Origin: Cyanophora paradoxa CCMP329
Taxonomy: Eukaryota > Plantae > Glaucophyta
Reading direction: 5' to 3'
DNA length: 64,000 nucleotides
NCBI GenBank assembly: GCA_004431415.1
Contig: QPMI01000056.1
Location: forward strand, 310,001 to 374,000
The notes beneath the pieces were generated by a model. It searched no databases. It worked only from the letters and a program-made list of their open reading frames with translations, and was not told the origin of the DNA. This document shows, piece by piece, positions 12,153 through 53,338 of the stretch (the first letter of the stretch is position 1; each line of letters opens with the position of its first letter). Position numbers and translations under genes: made by a program.

Positions 12153-12286
12153 TCAGTTTTGTTGACCCCGGTGACCGGTACCCCGGCCGGACACAGCCCG
12201 GCGACAGCCGCCGACGCAGCCGGGAGACCCGCAGCATCGCGTGTTCGCGCTAGCTAAAGCGTTGGAGACGTTCGGAGTCGCCGGCG

Positions 12287-14659: not shown

Positions 14660-14716
14660 TTGACCTTCGTGTGGTCCGTGCTTGCGTTGAGAATCAGAGT
14701 TCGATGGATGGACGCC

Positions 14717-15151
14717 GGAGCGCGGCACGGCAGGCTGCGAGGGCCGCGGCCGGAGCCTCGGGGCGAGTGGCGGGTGCACCTGGATCTGCACGCTCGAGCT
14801 GGAGTGGCCTGGACCTCGGGGCGAGCGGCGGGTGCGCCTCGGGGGGCGAGCGGCGGGTGCGCCTAGCTCGCCTGGCTCTGCAGACTCGAGTTGAGAGTGG
14901 CCTGGACACCGCCTGGGCCGTCGCCGCCAGGCCTCGAGGGCCGCCGGGGGCTTGCCAGCACGCGGCCCTAGTCCGGCCCCTTGGAATTGTGCAATCGTGG
15001 GGGGCAATGGCTGGCGGCCAATAACTGGGTACAGCCCCGCCACGAGTACTAGTGTTAGTGTCTTGTTCGCTCGGACTTCCAGCAGTCCTTGTTCCTGGCC
15101 TTGCGCCAGTCCCTGTTCGCGAGTGATGATCAGCTATCCCTCGAACCTCCC
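14717..15151 (+). repeat. Diverged duplicate of the ADP/ATP carrier upstream region plus its first ~9 codons
   Basis: Colinear similarity to ~15997-16332, ending in ATGATCAGCTATCCCTCGAACCTCCC (MISYPSNLP), followed by unrelated sequence. Confidence 0.85.
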
Positions 15152-31744: not shown

Positions 31745-32818
31745 GCGTCCGTGCCGCCGGGCCGAGTCCCAGACTCCCAGCCCTGCAGCTGTCTCTCACC
31801 AATGTCTCTCAGTGCCGGTCCACAGCTGCAGACACGTATACGTACATGTAGGCGTCGTGCGGGCGGGCGACGGCGATAGGTTCACGGTTGAGCGCTTCGC
31901 GCTGCCGACTAGATTTGAACTAGCTGGCCTTTGGCTGCCTCATCATGGCATGATCAGGTCGGTGCCCATGCCATGGACCGCTAGGTGCCTAGGTCAAGTG
32001 GGAAAAAGTCTGCCTTGCCTGGCCCAGTACTAGCTATAGTGGCCTGCCGCAGTGCTGTACGGTATACAGCTACCGCGCCCCTTAAGCAAGACACGGCAGA
32101 GGCAGGCTTGAAATATATATATGCACGTGCACAACTTGGCAAGCCGGCAGCCAATTGTAAGGCCTAGGCAGTGGACCGTCGGACTCCGGGACCGCGCTCC
32201 TGGCCGCACTGCGGGAGTCTGCGGCAGGACCTAGTACTCTGTACTCTGCGATCAAGCCTTGAAGCCTTGATCATGATCATGAAGGGGCCGATCGGATACG
32301 ATATACTAGATGATAATACTGGCCCCCGGGGCCCCGCCGGGCCGGGGGCCGGGGCCCGGGCCCGGCGGGCCCGGCCCCAGGCCCCAGGGCCGCGGCCCTG
32401 GCCATATAATTATAATACTATATATATGATATCGATACGTAGTACGTACTGGGCCACTACTGGCCCCGCGGCCGGGCGGGGCCGGACCCGCCGGGCCGGG
32501 CGCCAGCCGCGGGCCCGGGGCCGCCGCCGGCCCGCCGGCCCCACCGTCCTCCACGATATCGATCGTATCCGCGTTAACGTTCGTGATCATGATCACGATA
32601 TCGCCGAGTCGATTTTATCGCCGATCGATATCGCGAGTCACTGAGTCGTCGTCATATCGATCTTTCATCATTATCGATATCGGATCATCATTCGGATGCA
32701 CACTGCACACACACTGTGAGTCTGTGACACATATATCATAGTTGCAAGTTGAGCATTAATATTGCACATGTACACGTTAAATTAATGCCAAGAGGGCAAG
32801 CGCTGGCCTTGTCTCAGT

Positions 32819-32847
32819 TGTCAGGGCCCTTGGTGTGCACCCCCCCC
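32819..32847 (+). repeat. Left terminal inverted repeat of the giant element
   Basis: TGTCAGGG-N6-GTGTGCA-C8; pairs with 52002-52031. Confidence 0.85.
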
Positions 32848-33403
32848 AGGAGCATTTGCTTCAATTCCCGGAGGGATTGTTGTATATGGTCATGGTGCAA
32901 GGCAGGGGGCGGCGAGCGGGGCGCTCCTTGGTGGAACAAATACGTAGGCACATGCACCGGGCATGGCAGCGGCCAGGCAGGCAGTCCCTGGCAGCCGATC
33001 CTGGCATAGTGAACAGGAGCCCGGGGCGCGGCGCCGGCGAGCTAGTAGCGTAAGAGGTCTTTGTATCATACATACAAGTGGTTCGTGTGGCCGGGCGGGC
33101 TGCGCGCGCGCTGCCCTGGACGCGCGCCCGTCGAGCGTGCGGGCGCCAGCTCGGGCACTCAGATGCATGCCGGCAGCGCTCAAACCTACCACGGATGCGA
33201 TGCTAGGTCGCTGAAGATGCTGCGCGCGCCCGACGCGGCCCAGCACTCGGTTTTGACGACAGCGTCAAGGGAGGGGGGGGTGCAGTGAATTTTTCGACCG
33301 CGGGAACAGCCGGCGGCAGACCGCCGGAGAGCCGCCCCAGCCGGCCAAAACAGCGATAGCCTAGTGCACGGAGCTGCGGGCGCTCATTGCGGTTCGCCTC
33401 GCA

Positions 33404-35601
33404 ATGAGCGGCTTCGAGATTTACATCGACCCGGAGATTCTGGAGGAGTATGTGGCTCAGAAGAGAAAGGCGAGGGAGATCGTGGCTCTGCTGCACGAGG
33501 AGCACCAAATCCAGATTTCGATGCGCGCCCTGCGCTACAAGCTCAGCGACCTCGACCTCTCGACGGACTACTCTCTCTCAAAGGAGGCAGTTTACGATGT
33601 CGTAGAAGAAGCGGCGACTTTGTGCGGCGACGGATACGGCTACGACGCGATCCGCGGGGCGCTCAGGGCCGCGGGCATCACTGTGGCGAAGTCTAGGATT
33701 CAGCACGCCCTCGCGGAGCTGGATCCGACGGGACGCAACGTTCGCCTGGGCGAGTTCGCGAAAAAGCGCAGGTCCATCCACCGCTCGACCTTCTACGGGT
33801 CCGCGCCGCCACGCCGCCCGTGCCGCACCGCCGCGCCGCGCTGACGCACGCCTTGTGCGCAGGAAGTTCTTCGGCTGGAGTGTCGGTTTCGACCAGAACG
33901 AGAAGGCGGTGCCGTACACGAACGTCTACATCTTCGCGGCCGTGGAGAATACGTCCACATTCATCCTGGACTTGCATTGCGGGCTTGCTCGCTCCACTAT
34001 ACAAGGCTACAAACTGTACAAGTGCGCGCGAGGGGCACACGCCTCGCAGCTGCGTGCTCCGTGACCCCAGAGCTGCAGGTCGGTCGTGGAGGAGTTCGGG
34101 GTCTTCGACACGGTCTCCTCGGACTGCGGCGCAGAGAACCGGCTGACCTGGACAGCCCACGTGTGCTCCCTCCCACTCCTCTTGCTCACCTGCGCCGCAC
34201 CTGACCCCCGGGGCGCGGCCACCGAAAGGCGCTCGTGCTGGAGGAAACCGAGCGGCTGATCGACGAGGAAATTGCGAAGGGCAACATCACGGACCCCACC
34301 ACCGGCCTTCCCTGGCGGAGGCTCAACTTCGAAGATCCCAACGACCTGCGCGACGCCGTCATGGTGGGCCCATCCTACCGGAACCCGAAGGTCGAGAAGA
34401 ATTGGAGGTGATGGACACGCCCTCTCCCCACGCATTCCTTCTGTATTTGCTCTCTCCGGTAACACTCCATGGGCAGGTGGGTGAATGTCAAGGTCACGAA
34501 GCCCATCGTGGATGCGGCTGTGATGCTGGAGATGCTCGAGTGGTACAACAGGTGCCCTTCGTGCGACCCGCCAGTCGATGACAGCTACAGACCATGATGG
34601 CCATCCCTATGTACATGTTGGAAGGCTACAATCAGTTACTTCTGGCTGAGACTTGCCAAATTAAGAGCTCTTAATTTGCATGCGTGCATTCGAATTCACT
34701 TGGCATGCATGCTTATTATTCTCCGCTTGCATTCAGACTCGACCCTCAACAGCTGTTTGCCATGGCGAAGGCGACCATGTACGTGATGGAGTACGGCCTC
34801 GCCATCGCGAAGAACAGCTGGAACCACCACGTGAATTCAGGCTCCAAGGAGACGGGGGGCAGAACGGCAGGCCAGACTGGTGGTATGCACTGCGGCACCT
34901 GTTCCCTGTTCTTTAAATTGTGCTGGTCCCAGCTCACTGGGCCCGGGTGCAGGCGCGAGAACATGAACTACATGCGGCCTCTGATGTTCAACCTGCCAGA
35001 GTGGACGGAAATGAAGGATATCCACAACCAGAGGGGCGGCTCTGTCAACGGCTCGGTCCTTGACAGCCGCATGAAGGACCCCGTTGAGCCCGACTTCGTC
35101 GTCTTTGACGAACCCCGCACGACTCTCCGGTGTGAAATTACCTGCCCCGGGCACTCCCTTCATTGTTTATCAAGCTTCCTCACGCTCAGGATGCTGCGGG
35201 ACGAGATGTTCAAGGAATGCAATGAGGACTTGAAGGAGATCTGGAAGCATGTGGTCAACTTCGGGCGGGAGTATGATGAGGAAGCTCCGGGGGTACGTGG
35301 ACGCATTGCGGAGCAGTACTCCAGCAACCCCCTTGGAGGGCTCCCCCGGCTCTTCTTGTTCATGCTGCAGCTGAACGAGCAGCTTTCCGACCTGCACCTG
35401 TACGATGTGTCCATCCCCGGCTGGATGCAGTGGGTGCACGACGCACCCGCCAACAACGACGCGCCCCGTGCCCGGTCAATGCAGGGGATGGGCTTCTTCC
35501 CACCGGACGAGTACCTGCTGGAGCCCCAGGAAATGCGTGCAGCTTTCTTTTATTATGTGCACAATTTCGATCCCCTCGTGCGCGGCCCCCGGGCCCGCTA
35601 G
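33404..35601 (+). CDS. IS3EU-type DDE transposase (Clr5-like/HTH N-terminus plus integrase core), multi-exon, apparently intact
   Basis: N-terminal LRYKLSDL..GYGYDAIRGALR..LAELDPTG; catalytic D (GWSVGFDQNEK, 33891), D (VSSDCGAEN, 34122), E (GPSYRNPKVEKNWR, 34394); downstream SWNHH; the introns I traced through the catalytic core keep the frame. Confidence 0.88.
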
Positions 35602-35752
35602 GCTAGCCCTCTAGCGGCCCTCTAGCCCTAGCTTGATATAGCTAGCTCTGGCTATGTCTAATGAAACGCTCTCTCCTGCTCGCACTGGGCGGGAAAGGAA
35701 ATGGAAACATCCACATACAGCAAAGTGACATTGACCTAGGCCTAGAGCTCGG

Positions 35753-36347
35753 GATGAACATCCAGAGACAGAACTACCTTCAAGCTTCACCTCGGCTGCA
35801 GCCAGCCTAGATGCGAGCAGCTCCCCGACAATACCTGCAGCTCGAGTGAGTTTCCAAATGCCTGCAGGTGCGGGGACGAGCGCAAGGACTCGATGGGGCG
35901 CACGGGGCTCAAGAAGAGGGGGAAGCGCGGCCGATGCAGACGCGCTTGCGTGCGCGCTTTCGCCACGCAGCCGTGGGCCCTTCCGCGACTCCGGCGATCG
36001 TAATGCTCCCGCCAGGCTTGCCGGAGCGCGCGCCGAAGCCGCAGCGGGACGCCACCTGCGGTATTGACGCCATCGTAAATGGCCCGTGCGGCGCCGCGGG
36101 CGGTGCACGGGCGCTGCGCCGGCGATGGGATCGCAGTCTGTGTGTGTACCGTAGGCGGATGCGAGCCTCGGGCGTGCCTATTCGCAGCCCGCCGCGAGGA
36201 ACAGGTGGTGTTGCCAACTGGCACGCCCGAGCGAGGCGGCGCGGGGCGGGGCTGGGCGGCGCCCAGGTCACTGGCGGCTCGCTCGCGCCGAGCTCGCTGC
36301 AGGAGCGCTCGGCGGGCTCCGGGATGGCTGAGTCCGGTGTACCCGGA
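35753..36347 (+). repeat. Long internal inverted repeat, arm A (5' region of the RING-PHD gene)
   Basis: Near-identical core (~35870-36347) plus diverged flank matches the reverse complement of 45146-45787. Confidence 0.9.
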
Positions 36348-36368
36348 GAATTGGGGTACACATCGAAA

Positions 36369-38577
36369 ATGCGCACGCCGCGTCTGGCCTCGCCGGCGCA
36401 GCTCAACACACCCCAAAAGGCGCGCCGTGAAAGCTATATAGCCGAGCGTAACCACTGGATCAAGTACCGTCACGCGGAAGCGATTGCTGACTGGGCAAAC
36501 GGCGGCTTTGAAGGACCGAAGCCGCAGCCGCCGGCGCCACCCGAGGACCTCATAGCTAAGACAGCTGTTGAGGACAGCACCTGCAGACAGCTGTTCGCTG
36601 CGCAGCCCGCCGACCAAGACGTCGACGCCAGCCAGCAGCCAGCGCCAGCCACCGCCATCAGCTGCAGCCCGCCTCAGAAAGCGACCGTTGACGTGCACGA
36701 TTGCGCTCCGCACTCCCCCCTCGCCCCGTCGCCGGAGCCGATCGCCCTTAGTGCAACGGTCACTGCGACGTGCGTTGCCCGCGATCCGTCGCCATCCGCG
36801 CTGATGATACCTGTACAGGAATGAATCAGAGCTAACTGAAAACAAGGCTGAGGAGGCGGCGCCACCCGCGCCGGCTGCGTCGCCGGATGTGCCTGGCCGT
36901 GTGCCCGTGTTCCTGTTCTTCGTTCCAGTCGAGTGCGTGCTCTGCTGCTGCACAACAGTTGTACCAATCTCTTACAGTCGTGCGGCGCCCCTAGGGTCGA
37001 TCCTGTGCCGCCCACGCCCGCTCCTGCTGAAGAAGTTCTCTGCCCCCCACGGAGGAGGAGTTAGCCGAGATGGCGGCTATGGACTTGTCCGAGGGCGCTA
37101 TACAGGAGCTGAGGTCTGCAGATGCTGCTGCATAGCAGATGTTTTTGCTGACAGTCGTGAACGTGCAGAGCACGTGCATCAATTTCGAAGGAGGACAAGG
37201 AGGCTGTTGATCTTCTGATCGGGATCAATGCAACCTGCTCAGTCTGTTTGAGCTCAGTCCAGGATCCTGAGAGAGGGCTCCCTGTGACGGTGGCCGACAG
37301 CGAGGGGAAGATCTGTTCCCACAAGTTCCATGAATCCTGCATCATGGACCTGCTGAAGCACGGGAGGCCGTCCTGTCCTGAGTGGTACATACTAATCCCG
37401 CCCCCCCCCACCCACCCCCTGTGACAGTACCCTTTCTGATCTCTTTACAGTCGCATGGATATCCGCACTGTGGCAAGGCTCAGCGGTGAGAGAGTGAAGA
37501 CCATCTCCGAGGCTGAGTTCAAGGAGTGCAACCAGCACTTCCACGATGACGTCGGCCTTCAGGCAACGGAGGCTTTAATCATTGCGGAGGCAGTAGATGC
37601 GGGCGCAGGTTCTCAGTCTCAAGCACCCCCTCTCCCCCCTCCAGACTACCGCAGGCAGCCTGGACGGCGATGGACTTATCGTTGCCTCGTCTGCGGCGAA
37701 AACTTCCCCAACTACCACAGCCACCCCTACTTGTGCTGCCACAACAAGGAATCCATCTGCCAGCACGAGCCGGGCGGCTGCGGGCGGTCGGAAGAGGCGT
37801 GCATCAAGCGAAAGCACGTCAGGGAGAGATGCATGAACGCCTACCACCCTGAATGTGTGAACTTCGTGGTCGAGAATGGATTCAAAATGATGGAATATCT
37901 CTGTGTGTCCTTTGCATTACATTCGCGATTCAAGACCTCGCTAACGTTTTGTGTAGGCCTCGCCTGCTGCTGCCAGAAATGCCATTTGGCCGGATCGGAG
38001 GATGATCCCTCTCTGAATGGCGAACTCCTCATCTGCGATGGGAGGGCGTGCGGCAGGGCGTGGCACGTCGAATGTGCTGGTTTTTCGGATGCCACCATAC
38101 CCGAGGGCAAGTGGTACTGTGCGTGCCTCTGGATACTGGATGTTCATGCATCGCATTCCTAACACATGCCTTTTAGGCCTTGAGTGCTCGGAGTCAAGGG
38201 AGAAGAAGAGGAGGAGGAAGGAGGAGCGGCGGCAAGCGATGCGGCGTGCAAAGGATGAGCGGCGGCAAGCAACGCGGCGTGCACAGGAGGAGCAGGAGGA
38301 AGAGGAGGAGGAAGAGGAGGAGGAAGAGGAAGAGGAGGAGCAGGAGGCGGAAGAGGAGGAGCAGGAGTCAGAGAACGAAGAGAACGAAGAGCAGCTGAAG
38401 CAGAAGGAGGCGTGGGAACAGCGGAAGCGGCTCACAGCAGCGCGCGTCAGCGCCGCCCCCACTGTCGGCACAAAGAGAGTGCGCGAGGCGAAACAACGCC
38501 AGGCGGCGGCCCTCGCGAAGATTGCCCAGCACAGGCAGCGCACTGTAGAACGTGCCGTAGCGAGCATGAGAAGATAA
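36369..38577 (+). CDS. RING-H2 plus tandem PHD finger protein with acidic coiled-coil tail (alternative in-frame ATG at 36324)
   Basis: CSVC...CSHKFHESC...CPEC; PHD1 CLVC..LCC..CMNAYHPEC..YLCLAC; PHD2 CQKC..LLICDGRACGRAWHVEC..IPEGKWYCLEC; poly-Glu tail. Confidence 0.85.
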
Positions 38578-38623
38578 TCGCAGGCTTTGTATGCATCTGT
38601 GCGCACAATGTAAATATTTTGAT

Positions 38624-40650
38624 TCAGGGCTCAAGCTTGAGATCCTCGTCATCCCGGGCAGGGTCACAAACTACAAGAGCTAGCTTGCGGATCCGTTCCC
38701 TCCACTGCCTGATCCAGCACTCATTCGCACTTCCATCTGGTTTACTTGTGAGCAGCTGTGAGCGGAGAGCAGCCTGCACGTTGAGCTGGCTATCGCTACA
38801 TGTGGGGAACATGAGCGTGTACACAGCAGCCCAGATCCACACACCGCACTGGAGCAAAGTGCATCAGGAAAGACAATACAGATACTCTAGAAAAGAACTC
38901 ACATCGACGCAATTAAACTGAACAGCGTGGTCGTAGATGTTCCCCAGCACACTTACTCTATGGGAGTGGAGCATATCTGCAACCTTACCCAATGTTTTCG
39001 TCCAATTCATTGAATCGGCGAAGGTGCAGACAGTCTGACGTCCTTCTTTGCGGAGGTAGCCGAGAATCCTGTGTGTTGCATCAGACATCGATCTACGGAA
39101 GCAGTCTGCACGGCACACCAGTGTCCAACCTCACGCCCTGTGGGTGTCCTGTGATTTGTGTTGAAGCAAAAGAGCACATGCTTGCCCTGTCGAGCTAAGT
39201 CGACCAGCAGATGAATGTAGGCCGTGTTGTCGAGGAGGCCGAAGGGGCACGGGCTCTCCACATGCCACAGCGGGTTTCTCCATTGACTGCTGACAAGCAT
39301 GAGAAGATAGATGCCTGAGGGCACAGACACACACGGAAGAAGTCGGTCAAAACCATTGATCTGAGACAGAACGAAGAACTGTACGTTTACCTGTCTGCAC
39401 TTGAGAGGTAGTAAGTGGAATCTTGCCGTCTTCGGGGATCATCGCCAAGTCATCAATGACATTCCGCACATACTCTCGTACTGGTTTCTTGGCGTCGCTG
39501 ATCTTCATCGGCTTCAGTTCCTGACGACCTGGCATGGAACTGTCAGTCAATTGCCATCAACTGTGCATTCTGCAGCATACCCGGCTTCTGGTCGGAAGCT
39601 ATGCATTCCTCCCCTTCATCCCATTCATTCCTATCGGTTGTGGCCGGTGTAGGATTTTCGATCTCGACGTCGACCACAGGAATCGACATGCCCACAGAGC
39701 GTAGAGCTGCTGCTCGGGCAGGCCTAATCCTCCGAGAAAGGGGCGAGACGGCGACGGCAGGGCGGGCGGGGGACGGGGAGGTGGAGGCAGGAGGGGTGGC
39801 AGGAGGGGCTGGGGGAGGAACGGAAGGAGGCGCGGGGGGAGGGGCGAAGGGAGAGGCGGAGGGAGGGGCAAAGGGAGAGGCGGGGGGAGGGGCAAAGGGA
39901 GAGGCGGGGGGAGGAGGTGCGGCAAAGGGAGGAGGAGCGGGGGGGGAAACAACCCCATCTGCCGCGGCATCTGCCGCGGGGGGGGCTGCAGCGGGAGGGA
40001 CAGCAACGAGCGCTGCGGCCAGGCGCAGCGGCGGATCCTTCTTGAAGGCGTCGGCAGCGAGCCGGACCAGGAAATCTCTCAGCGTCTCGCGTGGTGCGTC
40101 CTTGTACACGTGCATGTAAACGGCTTGCACTTGCGCGAGCATTTGCACGCATGTGTGCATATGCGTGATCACAGGAGGCCCGCATACTCCGTTTTCCCCA
40201 TAATACACCGATTCCGAGATAGCACACCTGCAGGCAGAGTCAGCGAACACCGCGCACGAGTTACCGCGGCGGGGCGCACGCGCGGCCAGCGATAGCCCCG
40301 ATCCAAAGGAGGATCCTGCAGATCTCGCAGACGTGAACGACACGCTTCGAGCTATCTGTGTAAAGCTGGGTGTTGCGCTTGACTTGCTGCCCCGTCAAGG
40401 GATCGTACACCTGCTTGCTGAACGTGTCCTTCACGCCGAGGATCATGCATGTCTGCTCCAGGTGCCGCACGCCGACGGGCAATCCTGTATCGGGATCCAG
40501 ATCGTAAAAGCCGTTGGCTAGCCCCCAGCTCGGTTGGCCGCCGGCATCCGGGGCAGCACGATTCCTGCGCGCGGCCTTTCCCGCGCCCGGCTCGCTTGTC
40601 TGCGCGTCTGTACGCGGCCTCCGCTTCCGTTCCTCGGCCGGCGCTGACAT
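38624..40650 (-). CDS. Ulp1/SENP-like (clan CE) cysteine protease with N-terminal extension and Pro-rich linker
   Basis: After splicing: VLFCFNTNH...GH|WILGY (His), TFADSM (Asp), VQFNCVD|CGVW (oxyanion Gln and catalytic Cys). Confidence 0.82.
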
Positions 40651-40904
40651 GTCTGCCGTGCCGAAGGCCGCCTATGTGTATTGACGGCTGCCCAAATGGG
40701 CGTCAGCGCGGGAATTCCCGAAGATTGCGCGGGGCGTGCGGGCGTGATTTAGCACAAGAGGGCTAGCACCGCGGTAGGAGCTGAGCAGAAGCCTTGCCGT
40801 TGAGCTCACAGCAGGAGAACGGGACGGCGGGTGCTCCGGCAGGGGGTACCGGTACCGAAGCCCCAGCGCTGGGATCTCGAGCTGGTGGGCAGTTCCGAAG
40901 CAAA

Positions 40905-41613
40905 ATGTATAGGCAGCTGCGTCGTCTCGCTTCGGCCGGAGGTACTGAACTGGTATGTGCGCTGAGTGCGCTGCGCCGCCAGTGGGTCGCCTGTGCGCTA
41001 ACTGCCAGGCTGCACTCGCTGCCGGCAGGTAACGGCAAGGACGCGTGGTGTGAGCGTGCGCTCGTTCGACTGCCGCTCGTGCCGCCAGTATCGCTGCGAG
41101 TAAAGTTTGCCGCAGACCCCGCGGCGAGGCCGTCTGCCGCGCACCACCGCTGCCATCGGCATCGATCGCCGCGCGGGCTGGCTTCTGCCGAAGCAGTCGG
41201 GCATCTGGCGCGCCGGGACCGGCCTCTTCGTGGAGCGGCCGGGCGTGCGCCGTGGTGCAGTTGTTTTCAGACCAGGTGACCTCATCACCCCGTACCGCGG
41301 GACGATCTACACGAAGACTCAAGCGCTGGAGATTTTCGCTCGCGAGCCCTCGCGTCGCCTCTACAGCATCTCGTTCAAAGGCAAGTACGGGCACACGTAC
41401 GTCCTCGACGCCACCGACTTTCCGGAGGCGAGCCTAGCGCGCTTCGCAAATGACGCGGATAAGCCCGGGACTCACCCCCGCTTCTCGAACAACGCCTTCT
41501 TCCGCGTGGAGAAGGACGGGCAGGTCTGGCTAGTCGCCGACTGCGTCCTCAAGCAGGGGATGGAGATCTTCGTCCCGTACGGGCAGCTGTACTGGAGCGT
41601 GCTGGCTCGCTAG
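40905..41613 (+). CDS. Stand-alone SET-domain lysine methyltransferase of viral/bacterial type; start uncertain
   Basis: KQSGIWRAGTGLF, FRPGDLITPYRG, VLDA, LARFANDA, NNAFF, LKQGMEIFVPYGQLYW; no pre-/post-SET Cys clusters; two phase-0 introns upstream of the SET exon (41116-41613). Confidence 0.85.
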
Positions 41614-41878
41614 CTCTCTTCTCGTATCTCACGCGCTATCCTGGCGTTGTAGACCTCCTTTTCTCTCTTTTCCGGTTCTGTTTCTTCTCCCATCCAAATG
41701 AACCCAGTCTCTCTCATGCCAGCAGCTAGCTCTGGGATGGCAGACTGGCCTGCGGCTGCGCACGCGCCAACGCGACACCGCATGCACTGTGCGTCGAAGC
41801 GGGATGCGATGGCAAAAGAAAGAGCGCGGCTCTTGATGGGATGGGAAGAAATGTGACGCGAGTGAGCGCGCGACGTGT

Positions 41879-43171
41879 CGCGGCAACCGCGGCATTTTGA
41901 GTCTATCCGCGGCAACTCCGCGGCAGTTACGTGAGAATTAATTAACCACGAAATTAAAAAAGGGGGTAGTCCAAATGACGCGGCATCTTCGCGGCATTCC
42001 GCGCTACTAACAAATTCTGCGGCAATTACCGGTAGATGTCGTTAAATCCGGCAGTTGGCGACAGAACGCGGCATCCAAGGCGTCGTCGCGCTGCTTTCGC
42101 GGCTCTCGCCCGAGAATTAATTAACCACGAAATTAAAAAGTGGGGGTAGTGTGATTGACGCGGTGTTTCCGCGGCACTCCGCGCTACTAGCGGCAATTAC
42201 TGCCACACGTCGTCAAATTCGGTAGTTAGCGTCAAAATGCGGCATCCGCGATGGAATCGCGTTTTCTACGCGACGGTTTCCCAAGAATTAATTAACCACG
42301 AAATAAAAAAGGGGGGTAGTCCAAATAACGCGGCAACTTCGCGGCAGTTTTCCCTAACCGCGGCATGATTTGACAATCGCGGTACATTGCGGTTGTTCGC
42401 GGCAAATACGAATCGCGGCGTCAATTCTGGCTTGCCATCTGGCGCGGATCGTGAGCTTCATGATCATGAGGCGCGTTTTCTCCCGCGTCATGATGCCTGC
42501 ATGTCCAGAGGTACTCTATAAATATTTTAATCATGTTTAGGAGGAGGCGGGATTGTGCATGCAGACCACAGACACATGTGTCGAACAGAAAAGTACAGGA
42601 TGAACTGTCAGACTGACAATTCATGAATTGCCATAAAGCACTGAAGCTAGGGTGGTCTGTGGAAAAAGCGCACACGTTCTAAGCATGATTAAAATACTTA
42701 TATAGTTCCTCTGAACATGCCTGCATCATGATGCGGAGGAAACGCGCGTCATGATCATGAAGCTCATGATCTGCGCCTCATCGGGACATACGAAGCGACG
42801 CCGCGGTTCTGTAGAGCCGCAAAATGCCGACAAACCTCGCGAGAACCGCTAATTGCCGCTAGTAGCGCGGAGTGCCGCGGAAACACCGCGTCAATCACAC
42901 TACCCCCACTTTTTAATTTCGTGGTTAATTAATTCTCGGGCGAGAGCCGCGAAAGCAGCGCGACGACGCCTTGGATGCCGCGTTCTGTCGCCAACTGCCG
43001 GATTTAACGACATCTACCGGTAATTGCCGCAGAATTTGTTAGTAGCGCGGAATGCCGCGAAGATGCCGCGTCATTTGGACTACCCCCCTTTTTTAATTTC
43101 GTGGTTAATTAATTCTCACGTAACTGCCGCGGAGTTGCCGCGGATAGACTCAAAATGCCGCGGTTGCCGCG
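41879..43171. repeat. 1.3-kb quasi-palindrome with an iterated AT-rich motif
   Basis: 41879-42199 is an almost perfect reverse complement of 42850-43171; inner imperfect IR ~42448-42540 / ~42679-42777; five copies of AGAATTAATTAACCACGAAAT(T/A)AAAAA..GGGGGTAGT. Confidence 0.95.
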
Positions 43172-43252
43172 GATGACGCGGATTGTCGCGAACGTTCAAA
43201 GAACGCGTTCTGCCGCGGAATGCCGCTCGGGGGTTCACACTACCCCAAGACG

Positions 43253-44115
43253 ATGGCGGGAGCGTCGGTGGACAGCAGCACGCAAGTGGAGCGGCCTTGC
43301 TGCAACGAGAAAGTCATGACGATCGTCGAGCACAGTCTGAATGTGCGTTGCCTTTGTGGTCCGCGCGACGGTAGCGGGCGCCACCAGCTATCTGATGAAC
43401 TTCGGAATTCCCACAGCACCTCAACGAGAGGCTTGCCGATAAGCAAGCGGAGGTGGACACTTTGCACCGAAAGGTGGCCGAGATGGAGGCCAGGGAGAGA
43501 GCGAACGAATTCGTCGGACCGCAGATTCTGGGACTGACAAAGGTGCGCGTGCGATGCGCATGCGGCCGCTCAGCATGCCTCAGCTCTGCGGCAGGACGTA
43601 TGCGACAGGTACCGCGAGGTGAAAGAGGAGCTGAGCAAGTCTCAGAAGGCGCTGGCCGATGCGAACGCCCGAATCCGTGAGGTCGATCTGGGACTGACAA
43701 AGGTGCGCGTGCGATGCGCATGCGGCCGCTCAGCATGCCTCAGCTCTGCGGCAGGACGTATGCGACAGGTACCGCGAGGTGAAAGAGGAGCTGAGCAAGT
43801 CTGAGAAGGCGCGGGCCGATGCGAACGCCCGAATCCGTGAGGTCGAGGAGGCGAGCTCGATCTTCGCAGTACGATGCTCGGAGCTCGCAGTGCGATGCCA
43901 CGTGCCTTAGTTCTGCTCGCAGATCCTTGGCAAGAGGATGCGCGACGAATTGGAGTGCGGGTGCGCACGAAGGACAGTGCGTGGTCATTCCATTTGCTGC
44001 GCCTAGACGTGCCGCGCCTTTGCTGATAAATGTGCCCGATGCAGATCTCAAGGACATCATGGCCTACAGAGCGGGTTGCGACTACATCGGTGTGATGCTG
44101 GATGCACGCCCTTAA
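43253..44115 (+). CDS. Small coiled-coil protein with a tandemly duplicated exon+intron
   Basis: HLNERLADKQAEVDTLHRKVAEME; a 160-bp unit (52-nt intron + 108-nt exon DVCDRYREVKEELSKS..ADANARIREV) occurs twice at 43527-43846. Confidence 0.65.
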
Positions 44116-44349
44116 TGAGATCTTTGTAGGGCTTCAACTCCGAGAGATCCCCTCAGGCTTCATTGTTTTTCTGTTCAGATGCTTTTAAGTCCATATTGAT
44201 TGCCTTTCTTGCCCGGCGGCCCCTGTGGCTTGTGCAGCGTGTCAAAGGAGCAAAAGTAGCTGCTTAAAGAATAATTGTACACAAATGAAAGGGCACAAGC
44301 AAGGAACGTGCAAAGTGAAGGATGCGAAGGGCACATGCACACGAGTCAC

Positions 44350-45124
44350 CTACTCCATCATTGACCTGTACATATCTATAGGTCTGTAGATTTTCTCGGG
44401 CTGGTCGGGACCGAGGGTCCAGCCGTAGGCAAATGCGAAGTACCTGTGAGCAAGCAGCGCCTCAGCGGAACAGCGGAACGCATTGCAGCGGCGCGGACCC
44501 GTTGTATCGGGGGCGCGCGCGGGCGTAGTTGACGAAGCGATCGCGGAGCTCCTTCCGGCCCTGCACAGCTGGGTTGTAGGGCACGGGCATGTGTGACCTG
44601 CACACCGCGGCAAGGCACGCGTGAGCCAGATTGGGATAGACTGGGGATATACTAGTGCAGCATGGCAGATCGCACTCTATCTTCATGGCCGCGGCGCTGG
44701 CGACGCGCTGAATCCATGACTCCGACGCTTTGATTCCTCGCTCGCGGAGGATCGCGCGGATCCCGCGGACCTCGCGCCACACCGGATCGAACACCGCGAG
44801 GGCCTTCCGAATCCTCGACTTCGACGCTGTGATGCCTTGGGCGCGGAGGGCCGTGCGGATCATGCCGCCGCCGAAAAGGGGGCCATTTAAGTTAACAACC
44901 TCCAGCACGGCGACACAAAGGACATTGAAAGAGAGAGCGTAGTTCGTTGAGAGGCCAAGCTCGCGGAGCCTGGAGCGCAGAGCGCGCCTGTTGAGGTTGA
45001 TGCCGTGCTGCTCGGCTAGCAGAGTCAGTATCTCAGCGGCCGTCTTCCTCTGGTCCACGTAGCCGCGCAGAGTCTCCTCCTCGATGCTGCTTGGCTGGGC
45101 CGGGCTCGCGCCACCCGCGGCCAT
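44350..45124 (-). CDS. Truncated paralog of the element's transposase (DNA-binding part only, ends just after the first catalytic Asp)
   Basis: LRGYVDQRKTAAEILTLLAEQHGINLNRRALRSRLRELGLSTNYALS aligns to LEEYVAQKRKAREIVALLHEEHQIQISMRALRYKLSDLDLSTDYSLS; last exon AYGWTLGPDQPEK vs FFGWSVGFDQNEK, then stop. Confidence 0.8.
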
Positions 45125-45145
45125 TTCGCTGCGTACCCAACACCT

Positions 45146-45787
45146 CCCGGGTACACCGGACTCAGCCATCCCGGAGCCCGCCGAGCGCTCCTGCAGCGAG
45201 CTCGGCGCGAGCGAGCCGCCAGTGACCTGGGCGCCGCCCAGCCCCATCCCGCGCCGCCTCGCTCGGGCGTGCCAGTTGGCAACACCACCTGTTCCTCGCG
45301 GCGGGCTGCGAATAGGCACGCCCGAGGCTCGCATCCGCCTACGGTACGCACACAGACTGCGATCCCATCGCCGGCGCAGCGCCCGTGCACCGCCCGCGGC
45401 GCCGCACGGGCCATTTACGATGGCGTCAATACCGCAGGTGGCGTCCCGCTGCGGCTTTGGCACGCCCTCCGGCAAGCCTGACGGGAGCATTACGATCACC
45501 GGAGTCGCGGAAGGGCCCACGGCTGCGTGGCGAAAGCGCGCACCGTGGCACGCAAGCGCGTCTGCATCGGCCGCGCTTCCCCCTCTTCTTGAGCCCCGTG
45601 CGCCCCATCGAGTCCTTGCGCTCGTCCCCGCAGTTGCAGCTAGGCATATGGACACTCACGCGAGCTGCAGCTAGGCATATGGCTATAGCTAGGCAGTCTC
45701 TGGTCAAGGTAGTTCTTTCTCTGGAGCTGCTCGCATCTCGGCTAGCTGCAGTCTCTGGTCAAGGTAGTTCTTTCTCTGGATGTTCAC
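45146..45787 (-). repeat. Long internal inverted repeat, arm B (5' region of the transposase paralog)
   Basis: Reverse complement of 35753-36347, with small internal duplications at ~45635-45780. Confidence 0.9.
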
Positions 45788-45877
45788 GAGTACAGAGTAC
45801 AGAGATGATTGCACACCCCTCAACCCCCGGACGCGTGGTTACGAAAGGACAAGAAAGCATTGCACTGAAGAAACATG

Positions 45878-47856
45878 CTAGGGTTTAGCATCTGGATTGT
45901 TAGTGTCTAAGACCCGGCTGTTCTTGCTTTTTTTGACTATGGCGAGGCCACCATTGCCGTTGCTTTCGACTATTGCTGACCACACCTGTATTCCTTCCTT
46001 GTTGAAGGCTTTTTTCTCTTTCCACATCCTGGTCGACATGTCGAGCTTGAGTGGAATCGTGTTGCGCCCGTTCTCCAGAACCCGCTTCCAAATGACTGCA
46101 TGCCTCTGCTTCTCCTCCAACTTGCACACGCCTGCTGGAATCTGGAAATGAACGTCCACAACGTTCTTCCTTCCGGCCTGGTCTACAACCCGAATTTCAG
46201 GCAGCGGGATCTCATCGGTCTCGCTGCGATTTCGATCATTCACGTGTAAAAGAACACACAATTGAAGGGAAGGGCTACACGCACGTGATTCGTCTTTTCT
46301 TCCTTCCTGTGCTCTTCTCCTTGGGGCCCTTGCTGCTGCCCCCCGCCTTCGATCGCTTCGATTCTGAAGAAAGTTAGGATACAGACGGGAGTCTTTCGGG
46401 TTCACACGTGCCATCATCGGCCTCGACGCCGTCAGGAGCCACATCCTCGTCCTCGTCCTCGTCCTCCTCTTCCCCCCCCCCTCCTCCTCCTTCTGAAGAT
46501 CCACAGGGGGGGGTGGAGGTATAGCAGCAGGCGGGGCAGGAGGCAGGGCAGGAGGCGGGGAAGGGCCCCGCCCTGCTCCAGCCAACGCTTTGTCCGCCAT
46601 GGCATTGAGAAGGAGGGCCCGCTCCTCTGGAGTGCGGCGACGAGCCTCCTCTTCCTCCTCCTCCTCCTCATCTGCTGACCCGTGAGCTGCAGCCGGACCC
46701 GACGGAATTTAGTACGCGCAAGCACAAACGTGCCCTGGCTCGTCCGATGCATTCTCCTGCTCTCCAGCCCGGCAATTGCCTTCTGTGAGCCGTGATCAGG
46801 ATGCGGGCAGGAGAGTGAAGGGAAGGACACAAACCACGCTGTCGATGTTGTGGGAGGTTTTGAGATTCTCCATAAAGAGAGCACGCAATTTAGTCTCGGA
46901 TTTGAACTGTTGATTCACCAGGAATACGATGAACGGTTTAGCTTCGGCCAGAGAAATCGGCTGTTTCTCAACCACGTGCTTGCTCATGAGACTCTCCATA
47001 TCGTTCATCTTATCGTCAGGAAACACAACGTCCCCGGCTTCCCGCTTGCACATCTCGGCACACGAAAGCCTGCAGATACGAGTCAGCGGAGCGCAGACGG
47101 GGTTCACCATCAGAATGCTCACAGATCTGCGGCGAGGGACAAGGAAGCCTTCGTCCTCTGCTGGGCACATTTCGTGGCTTTCTCGGCGACGAACTTCGTC
47201 GCGCTCCCCAGCAAGAGCTTGGTTTTTTGGTTGCCAGGAAGAGTTTCCGCTGGCCCCACGGTCTTCTGGATCCACTGCAAGTTGAGTTGGTCTGTGTGCT
47301 GCTCGATTTTGTTCAGCAGTGAACATGCCGCGCGCGCCTGTCTGCGCGGGCCGAACCTGCTGCGGGGTTCGCTTTGGCTTGGACGTGGCGCCGATGCCCC
47401 GCCCGCGCTGCCTGTGGTGCAGCTGCTCCGCCGACTTCGCCTGCTCCGCGAGCAGCTTCGGCACATCGCAGGGGTTGGTGCTGATGAAGTAGTATAGATT
47501 TCCCTGCCGGATGTGCTTGTCGAATATCTGCGCGCATTCAGAAGCAGGCGAGCATCGACGGGCGGCGAACTGCCGACCTGCTGGTTGGGCACCCAGTGGC
47601 CAGCGCCGCAGAGCACCACGTAGAGTTTGAGCAAGGGCCGTGCGAATTCGGGAACGTCGAAGATCGCCGCCACTTCGGCGATGAAAGCATCTAGTTTCGC
47701 CGGTGCCAGTGACACGGTGTTCTCGCCGTGCTTCGATATATCCTTCACGGCTGTTACGATGAGGTCGGGGAGCTGCTCACCCGGCTGCTCAAACTGCGCG
47801 GCCGCGACAGCCGCCACGGGCGGCGCAGGAGCACCGGCGGCCGCAGCCGGGAGCAT
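45878..47856 (-). CDS. Unknown multi-exon cargo protein with acidic and Pro-rich tracts
   Basis: Coding-like exons (LPDLIVTAVKDISKHG..LLKLYVVLCG; EAKPFIVFLVNQQF; IRVVDQAGRKNVVDVHFQ..) separated by short GT-AG introns; no family recognised. Confidence 0.6.
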
Positions 47857-47899
47857 GGTAACGACGCGTACCCCCTGGCTTGACGACGCCGTCAAACCC

Positions 47900-48504
47900 A
47901 TGGACTCGCGCAACCCGGCACCTGCCGCGGCCGGCGTCTTTGAGTCCGGGCCGCTTCGCGGCAAGGAGTTCACTTTCCGGCGGCCTGCAGCAGCCCCGAG
48001 CCGGCGTCCGCTGCGGGCGCCGCTCCCTCCGAACGCGAGCTCATCGCCGACCTCCAGCGGCAGCTGGAGGCGCTCACGGTGGAGGTGCGCACGATAAAGA
48101 CGGAAGTCGAGGAAGGTACGCGGCCGCCGTCGCCCGTGGCGCGTCCTCGTTTTGAACCGCCATCCGCGCCGAGCTAGGTCAGCGCCCTGCGCCCCCCGCA
48201 GCCCGCCGCGCGCAAGCTCGGCGCAACGCATCTCCTCCTCCACCGAACGAGAAGTACACCGGGAGTCCGTCGACGGGCAAGATCCACAAGGTCTCCAAGG
48301 TCTCGGGCCAGAACCCGACGTGCCCGGCCCTCCGCGTGCGTACAGCTCGCGTGCCCCGGCTTTGAGGCACTCAGTAGCTAAAGGCGGTGCGCGCAGATGA
48401 AGGGGAAGATCCTCTGGCCCGAGTTCAGCTCGGAGGAGGCGCTCCGGGCCTCGGACCCCAAGTACAACAAGGAGGGCGCTCGCTGCCGCAACTGCTGGCG
48501 CTAG
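47900..48504 (+). CDS. Small coiled-coil plus Ada-like zinc-binding domain protein (needs one extra C near 47976); full protein not in the ORF track
   Basis: ELIADLQRQLEALTVEVRTIKTEVEE; spliced C-terminus YTGSPSTGKIH...TCPALR|MKGKILWPEFSSEEAL...ARCRNCWR* fits the Y.GS...K.H..C...F.S.EE....R.CxxC pattern. Confidence 0.6.
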
Positions 48505-48915
48505 GCGCTAGCCGTGCGGGGGTCGCTCCCCTCCCGCGGCGCTTCCTGTTCCGCGTGAAGCTCTGTGAACGTGTCGCTGAGTCGTGCTCTGAACACGAGA
48601 TGTTGTTGTCAACTTGGGAAGGGAACCTTGAAGGGATGCATGCATGGCCAGGCACGCAGAGAGGAGAGCGCAGGCACACATACGAAATCAATCCAGATTG
48701 CACACAAATACATACACAGCGATAAACAGCCGACATAGATACATACACAGCGATAGACAGCACATTACTATAGATAGCAAACACATGGATACATATATAG
48801 AGTTGCGAGCCCAGCGGGAGAGCTCGGAATGGACATGAAGGAAAATAAAATCCTACCAAGAGCACAGGCTATCTGCAGCTACTGCTGTGCAGAGCTAGCA
48901 GCTACTTCAGAGCAA

Positions 48916-51900
48916 CTACTGCTGCCCCTTCTCCTGCTGCGCCTTCTCCTTTGCGGCCTCCAGGTCGAGCCCGCCGCTGGCGAGGACGGCGTAGTTCATC
49001 GTGCGGGCACGCTTGCGCGAACCCTCCGCCGCCGGACGGGAGCTCGAGGCGGCCGGGGTGTCGAGAGGGAGGGGATCGGAAGAGGAGGAGCCGAGCTTGG
49101 GGTCAGGGAGGGGCGGGGCCGCAGGGAGGGCCTGGGCTGCTGCCTCCTTCTCCGTCTTGGACCGCCGGCCCCGCTTCGGAGGCGCCGGCGTTTTCTCCAC
49201 GTGTTCCACGTCCTCCACGGGCCCGTCCTCCTCCTCGCAGTGGCAGAAGTCCTTGGACCCCTGCCGGCACACGCCGAAGCAGGGCCCCTGGTAGCACTTG
49301 TAGCCGAGCCAGTCGCAGACGAAGACGTGCTTGCTGGTCCTGCTGAACTTCTCCACAATTTCGTCGTGCTCCGGGTTGCCGATGCGCTTGTAGCCGCAAA
49401 CACTGCAAGGATGGACGAGGAAAGCAGACTTCCCTGCTCCAGAAGCATGAGACAGGGGACGGCGAGGGGCAGAAACGGGCGTACCGTTGCGGGCATCCTT
49501 CATCGCGTCCTCGAGCTTGTCCTCCGGGACGACGTACGGCCGCAGCTCCAGGTTCACGAGCTCCCGATGGGCATCCTCGATGCGGAGCTGCTGCAAGAGT
49601 CAGGCAGTCCCTGCAAGGGTTGGGTTGGAGCCTGAGCTGTCACAGACCGAGAGCGGGCGAGTCATGCCGTCCCGCAGCTTGAGGACGTCGGTGGGGCACA
49701 TCTTGTGGAACATGGCGGCGTGGCACATTGCAATGCCGTTGACATACGACTGCAGGAGGGCGCCGCCCGACGTGGATTGACCAGCCGCTCCGGGTCCTTG
49801 CGGTTGAGGGAGTATTTCTGCTCAGCACCAGAGTGAGATTCGGTGGACAGAGGGGAACTAAGCAGGAAGGGCAGTCTGAGAACCTTTTCGGGCGTAGTCA
49901 TCGTCCGCAGGATGGCATGCTGCGACCCCGCTCGAAGTACATCGATGTGAGCACCACACCGATGTAGTTGCAGTTCGCCTCGTAGGCCATCACCTCGGTG
50001 AGCTCTGCACGGGGCACATGCATCAGAGAAGGGCGCGGTGCATCGGGTGCCAGGAGAGCACAACGCACTGGACACTGGGAAGTTGTCAGGGGTGATTTCA
50101 TTCACGGCGTCCTGGAAGTTGTTGGGCCGCCGGCCCGCGCCCTTCGGCGGCTTGTTGGGGACGAACATCTTGTACACTTCCAGGGGCTCCTCAGCGTTCA
50201 GCTTCTTCGTCATGAACGCTGAGAATGCATCTGCAGATAGAAGAGCAGGTGCTAAGGTTAGACTGAAGAGGGACCTTTACAGAAAGGAGCACAAGCCAAG
50301 AAAGGAGAAAGGAGCACAGACCAGCGAGCTGCGTGTAGGGGTGCGGATCAAGCATGCCTTCGATCTCGATTGTGATGGTCGTTGGATCCTTCCGGACGTC
50401 CCGAGCTTGAAGACGACGTTGTACCGGGGCTCCTGGAAGTCGGCCACACCACGGCTCCGGCGGGCGGCCAATTCAGCCTTCTTGTTTACGAACTGCTCGA
50501 AAGCAAGCGGTCAGTGTGCTCTAGAGGCCAGAGAAGAGGAATCAAAGGGCATGCACGCACGTCCCTGACAATCTTGGCGGTGGGTTCGCCATGAAGATGA
50601 TGTGCTGGCCAGTCGGTTTGGCCAAGTGCTTGTTCACGAAGAGGTTCCAGTCCTGCATGCTGACAGGGTCCTGCGGGTGTTCAAAAAGCATGCAGTGAGC
50701 ACAGAGAAAGAAGGAAAAAAGGAAGAGGTGGATGGGGAAGAAGAGGACGCAATGCATGCTGCTAGGCGGCTAACCTGCATGACCCACATCTTCTCGATGT
50801 TGTCCAGGGGACGACATGCATCTTCTTCGCGGGGTTGCTCGGATCCACGATCTCGGTGATGACAGCCGTGGCAACAGTCAGCGTGTTCCCCACTCCGGCT
50901 GGTTCGCGCTGCGGTTCGTGATGTTCCGCGCCATCTCGAAGCCCTTCGGGTCGAAGTAGTTCACGAAAATCTCCTCGCTCAGGATGTGTACTGCGACGAA
51001 GACGCGCGATCAGGTTCGAAAGGAAGACCCGCGCAATCACGGAAGCAACGAGCCGAGGATCGCGACGCACTCGGTGCGGAACTCTTCCGAGGATCGCGAG
51101 CATGTCGTGGAGAGGCTTCCAGGCCGCGTCCGCGGCCGGGGCGTAGGTCGCGAATGAGAAGGGCGTAGGCTTGACTGCCTCGATTCCCTTTCCGCTCTTC
51201 ACCGCGGCACCCGCCGCAGCCATGACCTTCTCTTTCTGAGTGACCGCGGCCGCGGCGGCCTTGGCCTTCGCATTCGTCGTCACCTGGGCGCGAGGGGCCA
51301 CCTTGCGAGGGGTCGAACCCTCCGGCTGCGCGTATAGCGTGAGGAGGATCGCATGGCGACGCGAGGATGCGGGCGCACGATCGTGGGCCCGCCCGAGCCT
51401 GTGCGCGTGGCGCCAAAATTTGAATGTCAGTTGGGCGCCAAAATTTGAATCGACATGGCGGCGATTGCGAGCGCACCGCGCCCCGAGCTCGCGACCGCGT
51501 CCGCAAGGCCCTGACTGGAGCGGCCGCTAAACCGGACCCCGAAGGTGGCCGCCCGTTGGGCGGGCTCGGCCGGCGCGGCGACCTCGGGCTGGTCGTCTGC
51601 GCGCCGAGCGGTTAGCGCGGGCGGCGGTTAGCGTGAGCACGCGCACCCATTGCCGTGTAGTAGACGCCCTGCTTGCCCGTCTTCCAGCCCGAGGTGGAGC
51701 ACAGGAGGCTGATGTCTTCGAGCTCCTCCGACGTGCCGTCGTGGCGCTTCTCGAGCACGAATTCCATGTTCTCGGCGTCCAGATTCTGAAACACAGTCGT
51801 CTTGAGCAGCCGCAGGACAACGTCAACGGGGCGGGCGTTGAGCATGTCCGGCTTGAAATGCACAGGCGGCGCATCCGGGCTGCCCTTCCTGTGGATCACG

Positions 51901-51959
51901 ACACGTTCGATTTCTCCCGCGGGCACGGAGCCCGCCGCGGGTGCCGCCGGTGCCGCCAT
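48916..51959 (-). CDS. Large unknown cargo protein with C-terminal CW-like zinc finger; several 1-bp frameshifts (error or decay)
   Basis: Exon chain from MAAPAAPAAG..; C-terminal HPCSVCGYKRI...VFVCDWLGYKC..CFGVC..CHC, followed by a PKRGRRS basic motif. Confidence 0.6.
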
Positions 51960-52001
51960 GTTCAAAAATTTGCCGCCGAGTTTGAATTGACGTATACCGG
52001 G

Positions 52002-52031
52002 GGGGGGGGTTGCACACGTTAGTCCCTGATA
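52002..52031 (-). repeat. Right terminal inverted repeat of the giant element
   Basis: G-run-TTGCACACGTTAGTCCCTGATA followed directly by TSD CTCAGT. Confidence 0.85.
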
Positions 52032-52442
52032 CTCAGTGAAGTTGGCAACTTGGCAAGTTGAAAATCAATCCAAATGATGGCAAGATTCGCAACTTGCAAG
52101 TTGCAAGTTCTTTCCAAGGCTTTCACCGGGCCTCGGCAATGAATATTATTGCAATTGCGGCCGCGTTAATAATTGCGGGCCTTTTGCGGCGATCGAAGTC
52201 CGCGAGGATAATATCCGGAATCCGAGATCCCCAGTACATGATTCGGAGTCTGATGGTAGGCAATGCTAGGGCTAGCTATAGCATTGCTACTAATTTGCTA
52301 GGCATTGTAGCTTAGTAGGCAATGCTAGGCATGCGCATTGGCCCAGTGGTACTAATTTGGAACTTGGAAGCCGCATATTCCCCCCATAGTACCTAGCCGC
52401 CGCGGCCGTGCCGCCCGCGGCCCGCCGCCCGGGGCCCGGGCC

Positions 52443-52907: not shown

Positions 52908-53338
52908 TAGGGTTACCGTATGTCGGAAATGTCGGTCACCCACCTTCCGACATCGACATTGTCGAATGTCGGTTGGATGTCGGTGCGATCCGACAGAGGG
53001 GGGGGTAGGGGTCATCTCCGCCGGCCGGCGGCAGAATGCGCCATAAATTATAAATTAAGGCTTCTGGCGCTCCAGGAAGTTATTCTAAGCATGTCTTAAC
53101 ACTTTCCCCACGTTGGGAGACCATAGGAGCGTGTGTTCTAGGTGCGCGACGGGCGCCCGGCGGGCCGGCGACGGCATGGAGGGGGCGAGAAATGCATTAA
53201 ATATATATAAAATGCATTATTTATATTAATATTTCCGATATGTCGGATCGACATTCGGTCACCCTCGCCGACATCGTACCGACATCCGAAATGTCGAACC
53301 GAATGTCGGAGCTTCGACATGTCGGTACGGTAACCCTA
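52908..53338. mobile_element. hAT-like MITE of the same family as 2228-2659, opposite orientation, no TSD retained
   Basis: TAGGGTTACCGTA...TACGGTAACCCTA; internal AAGGCTTCTGG.GCTCCAGGAAGTTATTCTAAGCATGTCT is the reverse complement of ~2457-2496. Confidence 0.85.

Follow-up and report, generated by a model that had tools for sequence, protein, structure and literature searches.

Borders and gene content of the element

The segment between positions 32819 and 52031 of the 64-kb window (the whole stretch of DNA from the freshwater glaucophyte alga Cyanophora paradoxa that was analysed) raises two questions: whether it is a single transposon that moves together with all the genes lying between its ends, and, if so, what use a cut-and-paste element might make of such a large cargo. 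The segment, 19,213 bp long, is bordered on both sides by the identical hexanucleotide CTCAGT, a target site duplication that the preliminary description had already pointed out. An exact match of six nucleotides at two fixed positions is expected by chance about once in 4000 cases. The imperfect terminal inverted repeats reported in the same description are also borne out: the leftmost 29 nucleotides find their top minus-strand match within the 64 kb exactly at position 52031 (22 identities of 29, with 19 of 29 for the runner-up). Since the exact CTCAGT pair coincides with the best inverted match in the window, the ends are non-random. The GC content of the element is 0.60, compared to 0.65-0.67 in the host DNA on both flanks.

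As to the gene content, previously estimated at about eight cargo genes, a reading of all frames combined with a check of splice phases by coordinates gives nine genes with short introns, the transposase included; one of them, gene 8, carries frame breaks in its 5' part in the window copy. The features of the element are collected in Table 1. The genes of the window were searched exon by exon, and all work on full-length sequences was carried out on EukProt gene models only.

Table 1. Features of the element and of its borders (positions refer to the 64-kb window)
Feature	Position	Strand	Description
Target site duplication, left copy	32813..32818		CTCAGT
Left terminal inverted repeat	32819..32847	+	~29 bp, starts TG; 22/29 to right end
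Gene 1	33404..35601	+	IS3EU-like DDE transposase, 8 exons; Clr5/HTH N-terminus, rva_4 core
Upstream region of gene 2	35832..36368	+	~540 bp
Gene 2	36369..38577	+	Pro-rich N-terminus, RING, two PHD fingers, acidic/basic tail, ~600 aa
Gene 3	38624..40650	-	N-terminus of no recognised type, Pro-rich linker, C-terminal putative CE-clan ubiquitin-like protease
Gene 4	40905..41613	+	190-aa minimal SET protein, without post-SET cysteines
Central palindrome	41879..43171	.	Non-coding, 1.3 kb
Gene 5	43253..44115	+	Small coiled-coil protein
Gene 6	44350..45124	-	Truncated transposase paralogue, Clr5/HTH
Upstream region of gene 6	45124..45673	-	Second copy of the gene 2-type upstream region
Gene 7	45878..48240	-	Multi-exon, start uncertain
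Gene 8	48916..51350	-	Multi-exon, start uncertain
Two E2F-like + CHR-like motif pairs	51407..51450	.	Upstream of gene 8
Gene 9	51427..51959	-	~160 aa, two exons, start 72 bp inside right end
E2F-like + CHR-like motif pair	51969..51986	.	Between gene 9 and right end
Right terminal inverted repeat	52003..52031	-	Ends TA
Target site duplication, right copy	52032..52037		CTCAGT

The transposase and its relatives

The product of gene 1 exceeds the Pfam cut-off for the rva_4 family (PF24764), matches Clr5 weakly and does not match rve. Its catalytic residues D142, D200 and E268 (encoded at 33891, 34122 and 34394, respectively) all align with those of its relatives. The transposase had been regarded as intact; this holds for the DDE core, which lies upstream of the break, but not for exons 7-8, which are out of frame at a run of six G (34854-34859) in comparison with both a second copy and a related family. 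The gene model on contig tig00001049 shifts the frame by one base at this run, and only its reading matches there the related family (44% identity) and the region conserved in more distant relatives; the sole splicing option that would keep the frame is a weak GC donor. In a nearby pair of 1.56-kb repeats 14 homopolymer indels in G/C runs are found versus 2 substitutions, which makes an error of the assembly the likelier cause, and we believe that the C-terminal frame break of gene 1 is probably of this kind. Several copies share the six-G reading, and a true frameshift may be present.

Leaving aside short fragments and the models from Cyanophora, the more distant matches of the transposase are of the IS3EU/GingerRoot type, and some of them possess the IS3EU motifs of Repbase. 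In a quick tree calculated without Repbase rows, the transposase forms a long branch that joins one clade with 97% SH-aLRT support, and this clade is in turn sister to proteins with Repbase-type IS3EU motifs; the type of its first-Asp motif is absent from the published IS3EU alignment. The nearest relatives outside Cyanophora reside on contigs of 0.6-1.2 kb, too short to reveal any cargo, while the longer loci of distant relatives (a hookworm; GCA_027604365.1) contain no chromatin-related cargo. Scans of viral contigs and metagenomes found no relative.

These results bear on the possibility that the segment is an endogenous virus-like element, i.e. a relic of a Polinton or a polinton-like virus, whose capsid and replication genes have diverged too far to be recognised and whose protease served in maturation. 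Polintons are compatible with the element in their size of about 19 kb, their inverted ends and their 6-bp duplication; moreover, the predicted fold of the gene 3 protease also matches Ulp-like proteins of giant viruses, and genes 7 and 8 have no database match. On the other hand, the transposase groups with proteins of the rva_4/IS3EU type, the genes are rich in introns, viral contigs contain no relative, and the exon-by-exon searches of Pfam, PHROGs and NCBIfam revealed no capsid, polymerase, helicase or packaging ATPase, in line with the preliminary description, which had recognised no capsid, pPolB or packaging ATPase. Polintons encode an integrase of the retroviral type, whereas the transposase described here combines rva_4 with Clr5, not rve, and IS3EU/GingerRoot represent a separate lineage. 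A viral relic is therefore extremely improbable in our opinion, and we treat the segment as an IS3EU-like transposon.

With the IS3EU/GingerRoot group (PMC10045372, PMC6839031) the element shares an integrase-like DDE core, an HTH-type N-terminus, inverted ends and the 6-bp duplication. The latter, which the preliminary description had named as typical of IS3EU, is indeed the rule in this group, whose termini are TA..TA and occasionally TG..CA (PMC10045372). The termini TG..TA of our element correspond to an allowed type at each end, albeit in a mixed pair. Its inverted repeats are shorter than those of GingerRoot (29 bp versus 100-150 bp), and its 19.2 kb exceed the span of GingerRoot elements, which range from 3.9 to 12.9 kb and contain gene fragments. 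Described IS3EU elements encode two proteins (PMC8232023) compared to the nine genes found here; however, the two-protein content is descriptive rather than defining, because Styx and the TET+ members already deviate from it. Styx/REP9 of Zymoseptoria (PMC8232023, PMC10853768) is likewise a multi-gene, IS3EU-related and recently active element with a 6-bp duplication, but it spans 7.9 kb with four genes, and the parts of these sources available to us do not note RING-PHD, SET or CE-protease genes. Elements of the Zisupton/KDZ type differ by the length of their target duplication, which is 8 bp as opposed to 6 bp.

Copies in the host genome

Close matches in the transposase search came exclusively from EukProt models of C. 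paradoxa. Near-identical transposase models are found on about six contigs (tig00000113, tig00020553, tig00020927, tig00001049 and tig00000743, and under the accession P019269), while models of the SET gene are found on tig00000113, tig00001049, tig00020689 and tig00020921, and under the accession P019273. On tig00000113 the transposase (g5679), the protease (g5681) and the SET gene (g5682) follow the gene order of the window, and since these models exhibit in-exon indels relative to the window, this contig represents a separate locus. On tig00001049 the transposase (g6676) and the SET gene (g6674) are two genes apart; on tig00020553 a single model runs from transposase exons into exons of gene 2; and on tig00000743 a single model fuses the first exon of the transposase with 51793-51987, i.e. 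a sequence that ends 44 bp from the right end of the element. A further model, P019275 (tig00000215_g18610), covers genes 7 and 6. P019269 and P019273 were assigned to tig00000215 solely by the proximity of their numbers to that of P019275; all three can be aligned to the window with no shift of frame inside any exon, and therefore the window is probably tig00000215 itself. A related family is present on tig00001343.

The genome of C. paradoxa is probably haploid (PMC6704402), and the copies occupy more than two loci, hence we reject the explanation of the copies as alleles or haplotigs. The adjacency of transposase and cargo on different contigs, the model that joins the two ends, and the probable haploidy of the genome together indicate that the cargo and both ends move together. 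Exact runs of amino acids span most of each copy's model, from which it follows that the copies are very young. Judging from these comparisons of sequences and gene models, the element is a real, young, multi-copy, recently mobile IS3EU-like cut-and-paste transposon of low copy number, and it very probably constitutes a mobile unit with the cargo as its integral part. The large cut-and-paste element with travelling cargo that was envisaged in the preliminary description is thereby supported; the opposite scenario considered there, in which other copies of the transposase lack the cargo, was checked on the gene models, and the same cargo genes were found to adjoin the transposase on three or four contigs.

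Predicted products of the cargo genes

Gene 2, initially described as encoding a RING and two PHD fingers, is open from the RING exon through the stop codon, with GT-AG introns. The RING and the second PHD finger exceed the Pfam cut-off, and the latter also matches PHD fingers in the PDB; the first PHD finger is recognised at the level of its Cys/His pattern. Gene 6 indeed encodes a transposase-derived, non-catalytic protein: its Clr5 domain exceeds the Pfam cut-off, the protein is 49% identical to the N-terminus of the transposase, and it stops just past the first catalytic Asp. The blocks upstream of genes 2 and 6 are inverted duplicates of 94% identity, and CpG transitions account for 5 of the 10 substitutions between them.

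The C-terminal part of gene 3 contains the triad and the oxyanion Gln of the CE clan in the order characteristic of that clan (His 39123, Asp 39016, Gln 38920, Cys 38848). A model of its fold predicted from the single sequence (pLDDT 43) was compared with the PDB by Foldseek; the top 37 matches all belong to the CE clan (probabilities up to 0.99, E ~0.002), with the NEDD8 protease NEDP1/SENP8 in the first place and yeast Ulp1 in the 43rd. Given the pLDDT of 43, the support of the fold for a CE-clan ubiquitin-like protease is moderate. The Ulp1-type SUMO protease originally proposed is supported as far as the clan and the triad are concerned; a specificity for SUMO is not supported, as the Pfam family Peptidase_C48 is not matched and NEDP1/SENP8 is the top fold. 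The SET domain of gene 4, predicted from the outset to be a writer, is confirmed at the domain level by a score of 22.5 bits, just above the Pfam threshold of 22.4. This minimal SET domain may be akin to the chlorovirus vSET type, which methylates H3K27. Sequence searches of the PDB with the SET protein and the protease returned nothing significant.

Genes 5, 7, 8 and 9 have no match in Pfam, PHROGs, NCBIfam or PDB where tested. Gene 5 contains a tandem 160-bp exon-intron duplication and shows homology, through its last exon, to one of the exons of gene 8; a Cys-rich finger considered in gene 5 was rejected, because the sequence falls inside an intron. Gene 7 has one frame break, at a G run near 46470, while the last exon of gene 8 is Cys-rich and resembles a degenerate PHD finger. 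The order of secondary structures predicted for gene 9 is similar to that of a beta-grasp; its predicted model, of low confidence, has no meaningful fold match, and a sequence search of the PDB found nothing significant. Two further domains of the preliminary description, a CW-like finger and an Ada-like zinc domain, had to be abandoned, with no match in Pfam at E values up to 10 and none in the PDB. A search of Rfam gave no match. The central palindrome possesses 322-bp arms that are 99.7% identical and a modular unit repeated five times, and is rich in CpG; its borders revealed no target duplication, and the interpretation as a nested element was therefore not adopted.

It could be argued that such an interior is nothing but passively captured, decaying DNA, as in Pack-type capture, or an assembly of pieces of nested transposons that play no role for the element. 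Gene fragments are frequent in GingerRoot elements, genes 1, 7 and 8 of the window copy contain frame breaks, and the interior exhibits several duplications in addition to the palindrome. However, the genes are whole and multi-exon, their active sites and the RING, PHD, SET and CE-protease motifs are intact, and the gene order is conserved between copies. The frame breaks sit in G/C runs, which is the signature of long-read errors seen in the repeat pair mentioned above. Homology searches with the SET protein and gene 3, restricted to matches of 0.55-1.75 times the query length and hence blind to longer parents, retrieved copies of the element only and no close host parent, which argues against a recent passive capture. 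We consider passive capture very unlikely, and it is probable that the cargo is functional and kept by selection.

Possible role of the cargo

According to PMC12344493, CpG methylation in C. paradoxa amounts to 32%, its level on DNA transposons is high, and genes that bear it are silent. The alga can be cultured axenically, and long reads, RNA-seq data and an EM-seq methylome are available for it. An anti-silencing role of the cargo is plausible, because the host CpG-methylates its DNA transposons, and we tentatively propose counter-silencing as the putative main job of the cargo and the likeliest of its roles. According to what is known of the family, the HTH N-terminus of the transposase would bind the ends, and the DDE core would excise the element and reinsert it with a 6-bp stagger, whereas the cargo would keep the element expressible despite silencing by CpG methylation. 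The HTH-only product of gene 6 might bind the ends or internal sites and thereby confer sequence specificity; the RING-PHD-PHD protein of gene 2, which would be co-regulated with gene 6 via the duplicated promoter, might read histone tails at these sites and ubiquitylate a silencing factor; the putative CE protease could act on silencing or repair factors by releasing SUMO, NEDD8 or ubiquitin from them; and the substrate of the SET protein could be a histone or any of the proteins just named. It is possible, if doubtful, that these products form a full counter-silencing complex, in which a sequence-specific targeting subunit of transposase origin and a histone reader/E3 ligase are joined by a lysine methyltransferase and by a deconjugase for ubiquitin-like modifiers, the latter possibly removing NEDD8 from cullin ligases of the host, with co-regulation by the duplicated promoter, timing by the cell cycle, and the products of genes 5, 7, 8 and 9 as further subunits.

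The observed/expected ratio of CpG is 1.03 in the element vs 1.13 in host DNA, and that of TpG+CpA is 1.10 vs 0.87, hence the element looks slightly eroded by methylation, and any protection would be incomplete. SET enzymes are also able to write repressive marks, an observation that speaks against counter-silencing. One might even imagine that the cargo represses the element, with a silencing mark deposited by the SET protein and the ends blocked by the HTH-only paralogue, so as to limit the copy number or to shut off host defence genes. A likeness of gene 4 to the H3K27-methylating vSET type and the low copy number would agree with such self-restraint, and truncated transposases are commonly inhibitors; nonetheless, silencing of transposons is already provided by the host and the copies are of very recent origin, and we find this explanation unlikely.

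Alternatively, the cargo could serve the process of transposition as such: insertion would be directed to a certain type of chromatin by the PHD reader together with the HTH paralogue, while the RING protein and the protease would tune DNA repair or the turnover of the transposase in the S/G2 phase. Repair pathways have been proposed as the target of Ulp1 and PHD domains that are fused to transposases of Ginger1 and MULEs (PMC2836005), the top fold match of the protease is a deneddylase, and three pairs of E2F-like and CHR-like motifs are present in the element, with 0.1 expected and none elsewhere in the window, for a pattern that was picked post hoc. Yet the reader is encoded by a gene of its own rather than fused to the transposase, and targeting needs no SET enzyme. 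A role in transposition appears rather unlikely to us, and counter-silencing remains our preferred interpretation.

Precedents and implications

Every recognised type of the cargo is already known singly in other transposons. The precedents that the preliminary description had named for Ulp1, PHD and anti-silencing proteins in other superfamilies are genuine: Ulp1 and PHD domains occur in Ginger1 and MULEs (PMC2836005), and a Ulp1-bearing VANC in VANDAL elements. Ginger1 (Ulp1, PHD) and HarbingerS and oomycete MuDR (SET) carry the same kinds of domains in DNA transposons, but only one or two per element and in combination with transposases of other superfamilies; in Ginger1, the Ulp1, OTU or PHD domain is a C-terminal fusion partner of the transposase, whereas here the domains form separate genes, with the protease on the opposite strand. 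The closest functional analogues are VANDAL/VANC and Kaonashi MULEs (PMC13317346), which carry an anti-silencing gene, in some cases with a Ulp1 domain; they differ in possessing a MULE transposase, a single effector and known target motifs, and in lacking terminal inverted repeats. Neither homology to VANC nor a VANC-like shared motif was found in our element, and a k-mer scan of it for a VANC-style target motif common to the non-coding regions revealed none that was convincing. Within IS3EU, the TET+ elements of rust fungi and a truffle (PMC12730594) resemble our element in carrying an epigenetic enzyme, for which an escape from silencing has been proposed, but they encode one TET/JBP gene and an alpha-kinase and target DNA methylation, not histones or ubiquitin-like modifiers.

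In the literature, Repbase Reports excluded, we found no description of this combination of genes, of an IS3EU element of such size, of one with nine genes, or of any IS3EU element in a glaucophyte. The novelty originally claimed thus stands with respect to the combination, but not to epigenetic cargo in IS3EU as such, which is known from the fungal TET/JBP genes.

The element extends the range of IS3EU to glaucophytes, and its size is above that of the members described in the literature searched (again with the exception of Repbase Reports). The known counter-defences of transposons are single proteins, such as VANC, TET/JBP, or a lone SET or Ulp1 domain, whereas the nine-gene set of a putative reader/E3 ligase, writer and eraser resembles the way in which large DNA viruses handle the chromatin of their hosts. 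If our interpretation is true, cut-and-paste transposons would be able to assemble multi-gene regulatory modules.

Surroundings of the element

The IS3EU-like transposon is surrounded by a non-coding stretch that is rich in repeats, and ordinary host genes are found on both sides of it, including those for an aldo-keto reductase, a queuine tRNA-ribosyltransferase-like protein and an ADP/ATP carrier, as well as a TCF25-like fragment. Near-identical repeats on the right-hand side (1.56 kb at 99% identity, 0.85 kb at 99.5%, and 155-bp units) are probably other young mobile elements. Their copies differ nearly always by one-base indels within G/C runs, so repeats in this assembly are prone to error. 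The start of the window matches the right flank in inverted orientation, and the element may be nested within an older repeat.

Features inside and around the element (window positions)
Feature	Position	Remarks
Host genes	10992-17810; 56377-57150	flanking
Near-identical repeats	54052-59576; 62439-64000	right of element
Inverted match	2228-2659; 52908-53338	72%
Duplicated block	35832-36368; 45124-45673	promoter-sized; copies mutually inverted
Modular palindrome	41879-43171	1.3 kb; CpG o/e 1.56
E2F-like + CHR-like motifs	51407-51450	two pairs, short tandem; upstream of gene 8
E2F-like + CHR-like motifs	51969-51986	one pair; upstream of gene 9

Relatives of the transposase

C. paradoxa holds a second, diverged family of this transposase, represented by the gene model tig00001343_g8330 (P0025; 44% identity over 100 aa). 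The closest relatives outside Cyanophora reside on three short contigs (L001, 1-975; L002, 1-1246; L003, 1-574), two from the run ERR10034898 and one from an ENA metagenome. One of the ERR10034898 relatives shares the position of the first intron with the window transposase, and L002 carries a divergent ORF upstream. In the hookworm Ancylostoma duodenale (L004, 1-13545), two related transposase genes belong to an inverted duplication that is near-perfect and whose arms span at least 4.4 kb.

Non-coding elements and possible regulation

Two readings of the palindrome, where CpG o/e peaks within the element, are possible: a nested foldback element and an array of binding sites. The two copies of the duplicated block immediately precede the RING-PHD gene and the HTH-only transposase paralogue, respectively, and these genes are unrelated to each other. 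Near the right end, a CHR-like hexamer follows an E2F-like site by 4 nt in three instances, against about 0.1 expected from shuffled sequence for this pattern, which was defined post hoc; scanning the rest of the window with the same post hoc pattern revealed no further pair. These motifs, which lie before genes 8 and 9, hint at expression that would be timed to the cell cycle.
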